Source of the DNA: Adineta vaga
Lineage: Eukaryota > Animalia > Rotifera
NCBI GenBank assembly: GCA_021613535.1
Contig: CP075493.1
Location: 15,004,001-15,068,000, forward strand
Direction: 5' to 3'
DNA: 64,000 bases
The number at the start of each line of letters is the position of its first letter. The stretch's first letter is position 1. Below are positions 31,613 to 35,627 of this stretch, piece by piece. The notes beneath the pieces were generated by a model that had not been told where the DNA came from, made no database searches, and was given only the letters and a program-made list of their open reading frames with translations. The translations under genes and the position numbers were made by a program.

Positions 31613-31877
31613 TATCTAATATGATAACTCGTTTTCCTTTTGAATGTATCATATTTAACTATGATATCTAGCGATTTTCTCAATGATTTGTTTTGAAGAA
31701 AATACGTGATTTTGAACCATAAATGTTGATGTATATCTGTATGAACGATTATTTGTTGATCCATATTTATTAAGAAAAGAATATATAATATTTTAAAAAA
31801 AGGAAATGGAAAGTCATAAATGTTACATATTATGAGTTCATTCGAAATTATAATGGAGTTGTATTCAGTCAATTGCA

Positions 31878-32539
31878 TTAATTTGAGGTTTTTGAATTAG
31901 ACTGACCAAAAGCATAGCAAATGCAGCAAATAAGGAATATAACATTATATTGAGCTATAAGGAGACAGTATGCAAAATTGTACAGAGACTTATGACAGTA
32001 ATCAGGTTGGTCTGGATTGTCAAACTGAACTTGACCTCGCACATTAAACACCCAAACACAACCCTAAAATAAACTGTACAAGTTGAAGAAACTGATATGC
32101 GACCTACTCACCACTATGAACCACGCGAAAAAGAGCAGTAAGAGTGGGATAGCACCACTACAAGTCCATAAGGTTGTGCCTTCACATCTGGCAGTATCTC
32201 TTGACTTATAGCAACAGAATACTCTTGATAAAATCTACGAGTATACAATAATGATGGGATACTTATTATACGTTTAAAAGATAAATATTAATAAATATTA
32301 CTAACAACAGAAATTATCACTACACAGAGAGCAAAACCAACTGCCCCAAATACAATCATATACATTGGTATCTTTGGTTGTATCGGACATTGCTTTATTC
32401 TCGTAATTCCAACAATCATTGACGCTAACGGTAAGGCTGATAACAATGGTAGAATTATGAGAACTATAGTGATCGATGTATATATTGATCGAAATTGCGA
32501 TGCCATCGATCGTGCTAATGTTCCAGTATTTCGTGTCAT
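31878..32539 (-). CDS. TMEM272-like four-TM protein (3 exons)
   Basis: CPIQPKIPMYMIVFG, AWFIV|GCVWVF and DYCHKSLYNFAY; two short GT-AG introns; stop at 31878. Confidence 0.75.
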
Positions 32540-33173
32540 TTCGATTATCTAAAAATATATTTACAAGTATTATATAGTAAGAATGTGGGTACGGTTTTAT
32601 GATGAAATTATCGGGATTGCAAGGAATTGGATAGGATCAATAACTATAACTAGAGCAGAACTGATTTCCGACTATTCATTATTGCGAAATAGGATTTGTT
32701 CTCGAGTTATTGCCTTTGACTGCTTTCACTCTTTATTCCCAAGCACATAAAAGAAGGCAGTAACGAAATTCGACAAAGCTATTAGTTTTACTTAATCTCC
32801 AAAAGCTCTACTACTTAGTAGGCACTCTGAGTCTTCTTTCGTGTGTTAAAACGTTGCTCTGAAAAGATTTGAAAATAACTATTCAATCGTTCTGCTTGTA
32901 CCACTTATAATATTATAATGTAAATATTTTTCATACATATTCAATAATTACTCACTGTTCTCGACGATTAATAGATTTTTCTCATCTAAAATAGTCAATA
33001 GATTACAATCTAAAAAGATGTACAGTCAGGAAGTGACAAAAAAAACTTTTTTTCCTATAATAGATAATTCAACGCTTTTAGCAGCTATAAAAGAAAACGT
33101 AAACAAAAGTCATTGTTATTCTTTTCGGGATAATATTGTCATTCTCACCAAATACGAGGTTCATTCGACTAGA

Positions 33174-33986
33174 TCAAACGATAGATGACACTTGAAAAAA
33201 ACCATCGTATACATCATAACCACTCCAGACCTCTCCACCACACCATCGAATTAAACCTTCAATGTACAGCATAACTTCTAGTATCCAATGCACCTTCTCA
33301 GACGGTGAAGATGAGCCCACAACATTTATCCACCATCGGTATGCGCCCATGAAATAATGAGCCAGAGCATGATTGCTCACTGTAGCATAGTTTGATGAAA
33401 CAACACCGTTAACGATAATTGTACCGGATGGGGTAAGAGGTGCATAGTATCCTTGTGCTTTGGTCAACTTCATACTGAGAATTTCAGCAGGAACTAGTTG
33501 ATGATTGTCAATGAACTGAACTCGATCACCCACATGAAATTTGCCAGCAAAACGAGCGGCGTTTGAGTCAAAATCAAACACAAGATGATTTGGAGACACC
33601 AGCAGAATAGACGTTGAGTTTGAAAGACGTGAACGTAATGTAATTTCGAGAAAATCGAAGAGGCCGTGTTGTTTTGCATGAATGAAAGCAATGACTGGTT
33701 CGTAAGTATGGTTTTTGTTAACAAGTGCATGATCACCGATTTGTAGATTAGACAAAGTTTTCGATGAACCATCTGCAAGTTCAATGAGACTCGAGCCAGC
33801 GAAACACACAGCCGAAATCGACGATATTACACAGCTATATTGTTCACAGACATCGTCCGAAACCGAGAGGCAATTGCAAGTATGCTCAAAGCCATAGTGG
33901 TATATAGCGAAGTGATTGTAAACATAAGTGCTTTCAAGATAGAAAATTCCATGCATCATGATGATAAAGGCCAGTTGAAACGTCAT
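33174..33986 (-). CDS. Secreted Hog (Hint + sterol-recognition-like) precursor, copy A
   Basis: Hydrophobic leader and 4-Cys peptide, then [13 protein letters not shown] (Cys61), [32 protein letters not shown] and SRR-like HALAH..YRW..VHW. Confidence 0.92.
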
Positions 33987-34817
33987 TTTTGAGACAAATA
34001 ATATTGAATTGCGACAGAAAATGCTAATACTTTTTGTTAGAAAAATCTTGAAAGGAAAAATAGCAACGGATCTCAGAATATATTTAACTACTAGAAACTT
34101 GAATGTTTACACCGGCGTATTTTATGATAGGATATGGTTTATGTGAGTAGAAATGTGTCTTCTCTGAATACCGAAATATAAAGGCAGAGATAGCTGACAG
34201 TCAACAGAGATGTTTCAGTAAATATCCCAAAATCAACATATGAAAAACCAAAATTCTAACTCGATGTTTTCCCTCTTTCAAAGAATTTATTACATAAAAT
34301 AGCCTGTATTGTCGATCCTCAAAAAGTATCCAAGATGCTTCGAGAATGTTTAGATGTTTTCAATTACTCTTTTCAGTTCTCGAGTGAATTTCATGACATT
34401 ATTGCTGATAAATATTCATAATAGAAAATTCTTCTTCTGAAGTTAGGTATGTGTGATAACTATCATAAAAAACTTATTAAACGTAACCACGTGAAAAGAT
34501 AACTTTGAAGGTATCAACTGCTGACTCCTTTTTTATTATATACGTTGAAAAGTAAATCTTTTTCGCGGAATATGTCACTTTAAAATCCTACATATAACAC
34601 ACTATGTTCGCGAATAGACTCCTGTTAAAAGTTTCTTCTATTAGGATTCAATCAAATATCTCACTAGACATATGGAAAACACACTTAAATATAATATACG
34701 ATATTTTATAAAAAAAACTGATTTCAGAGGGCAGAAGACATAATCTCAGAAGCATAGAAAAAAATCGAACGTTCCACTTCTGTCATTCTCACCAAATATG
34801 AGGTTCATTCGACTAGA

Positions 34818-35627
34818 TCAAACGATAGATGACACTTGAAAAAAACCATCGTATACATCATAACCACTCCAGACCTCTCCACCACACCATCGAATTAAAC
34901 CTTCAATGTACAGCATAACTTCTAGTATCCAATGCACCTTCTCAGACGGTGAAGATGAGCCCACAACATTTATCCACCATCGATATGCGCCCATGAAATA
35001 ATGAGCCAGAGCATGATTGCTCACTGTAGCATAGTTTGATGAAACAACACCGTTAACGATAATTGTACCGGATGGGGTAAGAGGTGCATAGTATCCCTGT
35101 GCTTTGGTCAACTTCATACTGAGAATTTCAGCAGGAACTAGTTGATGATTGTCGATGAACTGAACTCGATCACCCACATGGAATTTGCCAGCAAAACGAG
35201 CGGTGTTTGAGTCAAAATCAAACACAAGATGATTTGGAGACACCAGCAGAATAGACGTTGAGTTTGAAAGACGTGAACGTAATGTAATTTCGAGAAAATC
35301 GAAGAGACCATGTTGTTTTGCATGAATGAAAGCAATGACTGGTTCGTAGGTGTCATGTTTGTTGACTAGTACATGTTCGCCGATTTGTAGATTAGACAAA
35401 GTTTTCGATGAACCATCTGCAAGTTCGACAAGACTCACACTAGAAAAGCACGATATTTTTACAGTTGTTCTGCATTTATATTCCATGCAAACAGTACCAT
35501 TGAGAGAAAGACAACTGCATGATGAATCATAACTTTGCCAAGCAGATATTTCGTTTGTTTTAATGAGCAGTGCGAAAATTATAGTGTATATGAGTATTGA
35601 TATACTCGTAACAGTCGAATTAGACAT
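34818..35627 (-). CDS. Secreted Hog (Hint + sterol-recognition-like) precursor, copy B
   Basis: Signal peptide, a different 4-Cys peptide, [13 protein letters not shown] (Cys60); remainder almost identical to copy A (offset 1644 nt). Confidence 0.92.

Follow-up and report, generated by a model that had tools for sequence, protein, structure and literature searches.

Proteins that carry the Hog domain of Hedgehog without its Hedge domain are common, yet they are almost unstudied outside nematodes. Hog proteins with non-Hedge N-termini were catalogued across eukaryotes by Burglin (2008, PMC2362128), who reported predicted secreted peptides of 15-34 residues before the Hog domain in the Short-hog proteins of Enoplean nematodes (Xiphinema and Trichinella), and who postulated an ancestral secreted 'Ur-Hog', possibly adding a sterol-like adduct. 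In that survey, from which rotifers are absent, N-termini were conserved within groups only and the motif-J Cys was often replaced in Hog proteins outside animals. The architecture of signal peptide, short peptide and Hog domain is already known, and the two genes analysed here, A and B, are compared with it; they lie in tandem in a 64,000-nucleotide stretch of the genome of the bdelloid rotifer Adineta vaga (contig CP075493.1, positions 15,004,001 to 15,068,000 of the forward strand; hereafter the window). Among the papers that could be searched, none links bdelloid rotifers or Adineta with Hog domains. We conclude that A and B represent an undescribed rotifer subfamily of Hog proteins with its own N-terminal module, and that they are not a peptide-diversifying system.

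Architecture of the precursors and their place among Hog proteins

Genes A and B are intronless open reading frames (ORFs) on the minus strand, neither of them interrupted or containing an internal stop, and the ORF list places their stop codons 1644 nt apart, in agreement with a preliminary description made from the letters of the window. BLASTP aligned the two products with 88% identity across 238 aa. A profile search with the Hint module of Pfam (PF01079, curated cut-off 29.7 bits) matched both proteins at E values of 4.8e-33 (A) and 7.2e-33 (B), with scores of 115 and 114 bits, over residues 58-243 and profile positions 10-208 of 213. The Hedge domain (HH_signal, PF01085) gave no match in A or B, nor did Pfam return any match for the first ~58 residues of either protein. 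These results bear out the earlier view of the genes as encoding Hedge-less Hog precursors (Hint plus sterol recognition region, SRR) with a short 4-Cys peptide, and the N-terminal frame C-x-C-L-S-x5-C-x2-Y-x-C that the two proteins share, together with the catalytic Cys61 of A and Cys60 of B, was found as it had been described.

Alignment of 44 full-length bdelloid members revealed that C37, C39, C47, Y50, C52, C60, F61, H102, H133 and N198 (gene B numbering) are invariant, that the first Cys lies 23, 24 or 26 residues from the scissile bond in every member, and that a linker of 7-9 residues separates the module from the Hog domain. The residues between the Cys differ across the family, the charge of the module ranges from -3 to +2 and its Ser/Thr content from 15 to 52%. 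Ahead of the module stands a hydrophobic 10-mer with a median Kyte-Doolittle value of 2.8 across the family (2.2-2.8 in A and B); the leader would be cleaved somewhere within the 59-60 residues that precede Cys1. AlphaFold2 (AF2), supplied with the family alignment, modelled in gene B an N-terminal helix at residues 4-24 and a beta-hairpin that spans the module, with strands 34-43 and 46-55 at a predicted local distance difference test (pLDDT) of 72-86, while the junction residues 58-62 are predicted to be disordered and have the lowest confidence (pLDDT < 50). The module is accordingly described as a conserved C-x-C ... C-x-x-Y/W-x-C element of ~24 residues that is predicted to fold as a two-disulfide beta-hairpin. 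A protein-language search for look-alikes of the 30-residue peptide yielded no usable match.

Two further points concern the ends of the proteins. At the 5' end of gene A (window 33957-33986) the database model of 261 aa begins at Met10 and loses most of the hydrophobic leader; the longer start (MTFQ...) is conserved in the A orthologues of Adineta ricciae and of an ENA contig, which favours Met1. At the other end of both proteins, a conserved tail of ~25 residues past the SRR (...RWCGG...YDG.F.VS..., window 34818-34895 and 33174-33251) is found in part of the family only, other members carrying a shorter tail, and is without counterpart in Hedgehog.

Among described proteins, the Short-hogs (Xiphinema Shog1 and Shog2, Trichinella Xhog3) resemble the rotifer pair in that a signal peptide and a very short peptide precede a Hog domain without Hedge, an architecture compared here by description. 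In A and B, as in the definition of a Short-hog, a putative signal peptide and a predicted mature N-terminal peptide of at most 40 residues stand directly before the Hog domain; motifs resembling those of the Hedgehog SRR occur in both groups, and Ts Xhog3, like the rotifer proteins, has no Cys between the catalytic Cys and the C-terminal tail and hence no nematode central Cys pair. The Short-hog peptides were, however, reported to have no conserved motif in common with any other sequence, whereas those of the rotifers have the conserved 4-Cys hairpin, which is apparently present outside animals too. The Hog parts of A and B hold two Cys only, namely Cys1 and one in the C-terminal tail, and assignment to the nematode type of Hog (Nema-Hog) was rejected on the absence of the central Cys pair. 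Assignment to Hedgehog proper was rejected likewise, there being no Hedge domain and only 59-60 residues before Hog. The Warthog, Groundhog and Quahog proteins of nematodes and the Lophohog of spiralians are also lineage-specific Hog expansions with secreted, Cys-containing N-termini other than Hedge, but the N-terminal domains of the three nematode families are much larger and none is matched by Pfam in A or B. A short secreted Cys-containing N-terminus before Hog is also the form of protist Hogs and of the proposed Ur-Hog; unlike the group-limited N-termini of Burglin, however, the rotifer-type module turns up in several Hog clades and, it appears, in more than one supergroup, the taxonomy of this spread deriving from three transcriptomes of phagotrophs and from metagenome contigs.

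Gene conversion of the Hog block and selection on the N-termini

The preliminary description had counted about eight, mostly silent, differences in a block shared by A and B, and had seen similarity decay toward the catalytic Cys and collapse upstream of it. Both observations hold in detail. In ungapped register (A + 1644) the core tracts, 33137-33700 in A and 34781-35344 in B, agree at all but exactly 8 of their 564 positions; one of the differences falls in the 3' untranslated region (UTR), six are synonymous and one is non-synonymous (A143T). The ~106 nt between this block and the catalytic Cys codon contain 20 differences, and identity is ~40% upstream of that codon and likewise beyond 37 nt past the stop. 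At the protein level the Hog parts of A and B are 99% identical.

Both genes have counterparts, arranged in tandem and in the order seen here, on a 184-kb contig of A. ricciae whose downstream genes are collinear with the window. This contig permits a comparison of paralogues and orthologues by Nei-Gojobori estimates of synonymous (dS) and non-synonymous (dN) divergence. Over Hog codons 95 to the end, dS between paralogues is 0.051 in A. vaga and 0.060 in A. ricciae, against 0.85-0.95 in all four cross-species pairs, and dN/dS between species is ~0.1; in the transition zone (codons 62-95) the paralogue dS of ~0.7 is near that of orthologues. In the N-terminal region the relationship is reversed, paralogues A and B sharing 21-25% protein identity and orthologues 62% (A type) or 71% (B type). 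Synonymous sites of the peptide region are saturated between paralogues, and dN/dS between orthologues is 0.14 and 0.27; those of the leader are saturated too (dS ~1.2), with orthologue dN/dS of 0.33 and 0.38. Since the duplication predates the species split, yet the Hog parts are nearly identical within each species, gene conversion, already proposed as one possibility in the preliminary description, is demonstrated: the A/B duplication is older than the separation of A. vaga and A. ricciae, and the Hog block has since been homogenised independently in each. The homogenised block extends only from about codon 65-95 to about 37 nt past the stop, while the leaders and peptides of A and B remain two separate types on which purifying selection acts.

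The same comparison bears on two other explanations of the contrast between the halves of the genes. That the near-identity is an artefact, whether through a chimeric assembly, through the collapse of haplotypes or through a partial duplication of very recent date, would find its sole encouragement in the abruptness of the identity boundaries; the independent A. ricciae assembly has the same pair with the same boundaries, the same identity profile and collinear flanking genes, and the paralogue dS of 0.05-0.06 within each species contrasts with saturation in the flanks and N-termini, which leaves this explanation with hardly any credibility. Recent partial duplication and assembly chimera were both rejected on the presence of the pair in A. 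ricciae.

The other explanation, which grows out of the preliminary description, is that domain swapping recycles a constant autoprocessing cassette for the release of variable peptides under diversifying selection. It would accord with the 21% identity of the A and B peptides ahead of Hog parts that are 99% identical, and with the variation of the inter-Cys residues across the family. It is nevertheless very improbable, as each peptide type has an A. ricciae orthologue (62-71% N-terminal identity), the dN/dS values on the N-terminal side of the Cys (0.14-0.27 in the peptide, 0.33-0.38 in the leader) indicate purifying selection, and the four Cys, the Tyr and their spacing are invariant in the 44 bdelloid sequences; diversifying selection was rejected, no orthologue dN/dS in peptides or leaders exceeding 0.38. 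Moreover, the identity step falls at equal places in both species (coding nt ~190-220 and ~35 nt past the stop), and in both the conversion tract ends where the DNA ceases to be alignable. The pattern returns in two further tandem Hog pairs of A. vaga: a second pair of the A/B subfamily, on C2, has a 100%-identical tract at coding nt ~238-690, and a pair from a different, intron-containing subfamily (C6:9613033-9615312; L010, L011) has a ~650-nt tract of 95-100% identity between flanks of ~40%. Gene conversion between tandem Hog paralogues thus seems to be general in this genome. The appearance of a constant module with variable cargo is the pattern that homology-limited conversion between tandem paralogues produces; it requires no domain swapping, which is unsupported here, and it is not a diversification device.

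Table 1. Coordinates of genes A and B and of their parts in the window (all on the minus strand)
Feature	Position	Strand	Description	Basis
Gene A	33174..33986	-	intronless coding sequence, 270 aa: hydrophobic leader, aromatic-rich stretch, 4-Cys module, Hog domain	ORF list; Pfam Hint; A. ricciae orthologue L031:9546-10361
Gene B	34818..35627	-	intronless coding sequence, 269 aa: signal-peptide-like helix, 4-Cys module, Hog domain	ORF list; Pfam Hint; AF2 model; A. ricciae orthologue L031:8001-8816
Gene A 4-Cys module and linker	33807..33878	-	codons 37-60: C37, C39, C47, Y50, C52, then 8 residues to the scissile bond	44-sequence alignment
Gene B 4-Cys module and linker	35451..35519	-	codons 37-59; predicted beta-hairpin, strands 34-43 and 46-55	44-sequence alignment; AF2
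Gene A catalytic Cys61 codon	33804..33806	-	TGT, followed by the invariant Phe	family alignment
Gene B catalytic Cys60 codon	35448..35450	-	TGC, followed by the invariant Phe	aligned with Cys1 of Drosophila Hh-C in 6TYY/1AT0
Core gene-conversion tract, copy A	33137..33700	-	37 nt of 3' UTR, stop codon and codons 96-270	
Core gene-conversion tract, copy B	34781..35344	-		pairwise comparison with copy A; dS
Transition zone, copy A	33701..33803	-	codons 62-95	
Transition zone, copy B	35345..35447	-		pairwise comparison; dS
Gene B SRR-like helix-loop-helix	34887..35027	-	residues ~201-247, motifs ...LAH...YRWW and VHW...LY	Pfam; phmmer; AF2; ESM-Atlas
Gene A SRR-like region	33243..33383	-	residues ~202-248; protein sequence same as gene B here	pairwise comparison

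The Hog active site and the processing it may support

Structural comparison places the rotifer Hog domain close to that of Hedgehog. The Hint core of gene B is confidently modelled (AF2 pLDDT ~90), and the best Foldseek matches in the PDB were 6TYY (Hedgehog D46H; template modelling score, TM-score, 0.84) and 1AT0 (0.83; both target TM-scores), followed by inteins and bacterial intein-like (BIL) domains. In the ESM-Atlas the neighbours are hedgehog proteins, with alignments of 195-213 residues that reach past the Hint core, and phmmer aligned a stretch of gene B with the helix that opens the SRR in the fly Hh protein and in human SHH. In common with Hh-C (1AT0, 6TYY) the rotifer domain has the Hint fold, Cys1-Phe, the His of the xxH motif and predicted SRR-like helices after the Hint core; unlike Hedgehog, the proteins lack Hedge/HH_signal, have Ser for Thr69 and Asn for Cys143, and carry the extra conserved tail of ~25 residues.

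Residue correspondences were obtained by phmmer against PDB sequences, in which C60 of gene B (C61 of A) aligns with Cys1 of Drosophila Hh-C, SPNH with TPAH (Thr69, His72), H102 with Asp46 (His in 6TYY) and SNY (N198) with SCY (Cys143). The SPNH His is invariant, and Ser stands for Thr69 in 14/14 bdelloid representatives as well as in roughly half of the remaining Hog sample. The combination of His46 and Asn143 likewise occurs in all 14 bdelloid representatives. Cys143 is kept in the seven other A. vaga Hog paralogues examined, and Asn stands at this position in 21 of 106 other top Hog matches, a sample biased toward query-like sequences. The bdelloid family, as its sequences read, departs from two defining features of the Hedgehog cholesterolysis site, the general base Asp46 and Cys143, which also serves as disulfide partner of Cys1.

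The two departures differ in what they imply. Sonic hedgehog D46H still autoprocesses in cells (Faris et al. 2025, PMC12054796), and the natural His at position 46 corresponds to this engineered, active form; since the D46H protein autoprocesses, His46 is compatible with activity, and function may by analogy be kept with His102 at the Asp46 site. Cys143, on the other hand, carries the branched thioester intermediate in Hedgehog, for which reason processing is lost in its mutants: C143A and C143D abolish both autoprocessing and dithiothreitol-driven cleavage (PMC12054796). With Asn198 in the place of Cys143, cleavage competence is not to be assumed from homology.

Taking these features together, we consider it probable that A and B are members of a bdelloid-wide, intronless, Hedge-less Hog subfamily built of a leader, a 4-Cys hairpin module, a linker and a Hint plus SRR unit beginning at the invariant Cys-Phe, in which the Hog block alone is homogenised by conversion and from which the hairpin peptide would be released. 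The precursor would enter the endoplasmic reticulum, where the leader would be removed and the two disulfides of the hairpin would form; with the help of His133, the chain would then undergo an N-to-S acyl shift at Cys60/61 and yield a linear thioester. As Asn replaces Cys143 and excludes the branched-thioester route, this thioester would have to be resolved directly, without a Cys143 intermediate, by a nucleophile that His102 activates and the SRR-like helices hold in position. The hairpin peptide so released would measure ~30 aa for B and ~40 aa for A, and might bear a sterol or other lipid adduct at its C-terminus. Self-cleavage of both precursors is rather to be expected than not, while a sterol as the adduct is a possible but doubtful proposition.

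Several observations weigh against this reading. Asn198 is invariant in the family at the site of the Hedgehog Cys143, and the C-terminal helices assigned to the SRR (205-222 and 233-247) are modelled at a pLDDT of ~58-69 only. The leader of gene A is only moderately hydrophobic (Kyte-Doolittle 2.2), and the database model of that gene begins downstream of Met1, at Met10. The peptide to be released is near neutral and Ser/Thr-rich, pointing to no known activity. No transcript contig was found, the contig of homologue P0003 being low-coverage metagenomic DNA.

The Asn at position 143 lends itself to two further readings. In the first, Hog cleaves without sterol, the Cys60/61 thioester being resolved by water or a small non-sterol nucleophile and the peptide left unlipidated or otherwise adducted. 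The invariance of this Asn, given the requirement for Cys143 in the Hedgehog cholesterolysis route, the modest confidence of the SRR model and the fact that Burglin left the adduct of non-Hh Hog domains open under the term 'adduct recognition region' all speak for it; yet the proteins have kept SRR-like motifs and helices, and these show strong conservation (Hog dN/dS ~0.1; the LAH motif invariant; R216 and W218 of YRWW conserved in at least 90% of sequences), and D46H Hedgehog is competent for cholesterolysis in cells. Cleavage without sterol is a tentative option that we would not favour. In the second, A and B are non-cleaving pseudo-Hogs, that is, intact secreted or membrane-bound proteins of ~240 aa in which the 4-Cys hairpin is a permanent N-terminal cap, as the loss of the Hedgehog-essential Cys143 might suggest and as would fit a structural rather than a cargo role for a module fixed at 23-26 residues. 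The invariance of Cys-Phe, of the SxxH His and of His102 in 44/44 sequences and in distant relatives is hard to explain without catalysis, however, and the pLDDT below 50 at residues 58-62 is as expected for a flexible linker between two units, so that a pseudo-Hog appears improbable, and a self-cleaving Hog with a releasable hairpin is preferred.

Genomic context, relatives and significance

A six-frame profile search of the A. vaga genome (100.8 Mb in six pieces) detected 54 Hint matches, at roughly 30 or more loci, against zero matches to HH_signal (PF01085), the latter being a weak negative. By its sequence, A. vaga may therefore be in a state like that of C. elegans, with no true Hedgehog but many Hog genes. 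The A/B subfamily accounts for six loci, all uninterrupted: besides the window pair, which lies on C1, there is another tandem pair on C2, and C3 has two genes that stand singly. Many of the other Hog loci are split at profile positions ~62-65 and ~146-149 in the six-frame search, as expected for introns.

In a collection of 5.8 billion proteins, 58 strongest homologues (E < 1e-40) were retrieved; all the named ones belong to Adineta or Rotaria, and the remainder derive from metagenome contigs. A tree of 127 Hog domains unites the bdelloid 4-Cys proteins in one monophyletic group (98 by the Shimodaira-Hasegawa approximate likelihood ratio test) that stands apart from other A. vaga Hogs and has metagenomic 4-Cys Hogs as its nearest neighbours; the deep nodes of this tree are without support.

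Directly downstream of gene A lies a small predicted membrane-protein gene (window 31800-32570, minus strand, including the ORF 32288-32539), which is conserved and collinear in A. ricciae; the annotation of the latter joins it to the A orthologue in a 432-aa 'Hint' model, probably a mis-annotation. The second pair of the subfamily (L007:1348-2154 and L007:2627-3415; C2:1118828-1120895) has diverged N-termini, one of them with a 'MNVALIH...KDYE' type of leader, and diverged C-terminal tails. Its two leader types share contigs in other bdelloids too (P0012/P0014, P0019/P0024), from which it follows that this pair is old as well as converting. Elsewhere on C1, an inverted Hog pair (17657229-17661217; L027/L028), with members ~3 kb apart on opposite strands, has identical exon translations and Ser/Ala-rich N-termini, and two near-identical Hog genes 50 kb apart (13329875 and 13380562; L016, L018) carry a membrane-anchor-like segment and a run of ~15-17 Thr just before the catalytic Cys, in the manner of Hoglet and T-hog.

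The hairpin module has a distribution beyond the bdelloids. A profile search of 1.84 billion representatives returned 7670 Hog-like proteins, and a C-x-C...C-x-x-W-x-C motif ending 7-12 residues before Cys-Phe was present in 17 of the 94 non-bdelloid top matches with at least 30 residues upstream, where composition-preserving shuffles gave 0.19 expected carriers and a maximum of 3. AF2 predicts the same hairpin in the distant metagenomic homologue P0090. Three of the 17 carriers are named, all from EukProt transcriptomes (Rhodelphis marinus, Ploeotia vitrea and Plagiopyla frontata), and as all three organisms are phagotrophs, contamination by prey may account for these sets. Neither the nearest non-bdelloid 4-Cys Hog (P0092) nor a profile built from 20 distant members led to informative named relatives in word-indexed searches.

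One further 4-Cys Hog (P0099, L033:10001-10906) is located on a 110-kb metagenome contig (ENA ERZ27250609 k141_57624) of 57-62% GC content with dense, apparently intronless genes; these include kinases, F-box, MORN and ankyrin proteins, most of the others being without a Pfam match. The contig could represent a compact protist genome or a giant-virus-like genome. A scan of IMG/VR for viral 4-Cys Hog copies found no confirmed relative, and the idea of giant viruses as carriers is unsupported.

On the 127-domain tree the 4-Cys motif needs at least five changes on supported branches, and an ancient origin, convergence or horizontal acquisition by bdelloids might each account for its distribution. 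It is conceivable, though we would put it forward as a conjecture only, that the hairpin is an ancient pan-eukaryotic cargo or partner of Hog, perhaps the original N-terminus of the Ur-Hog, which reached bdelloids vertically or horizontally, and that the bdelloid branch with His46 and Asn143 is a natural case of Hog autoprocessing without a Cys143 intermediate. Were protists truly to share the module, it would be the first Hog N-terminus conserved beyond one phylum; were the ancient-module reading true, the bdelloid Hog would bypass an intermediate that was recently called indispensable for Hedgehog.

For the evolution of the family, the A/B pair provides a clean natural case of concerted evolution limited to one domain of a two-part gene, reached independently in two species, and demonstrates that gene conversion can give such a pair the look of a 'constant cassette, variable cargo' design. 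For its biochemistry, the very small hairpin cargo of ~24 residues would allow an adduct to be identified easily by mass spectrometry, and a natural site that combines the His46 'general base swap' with the loss of Cys143 offers a test of how general the branched-intermediate mechanism is.

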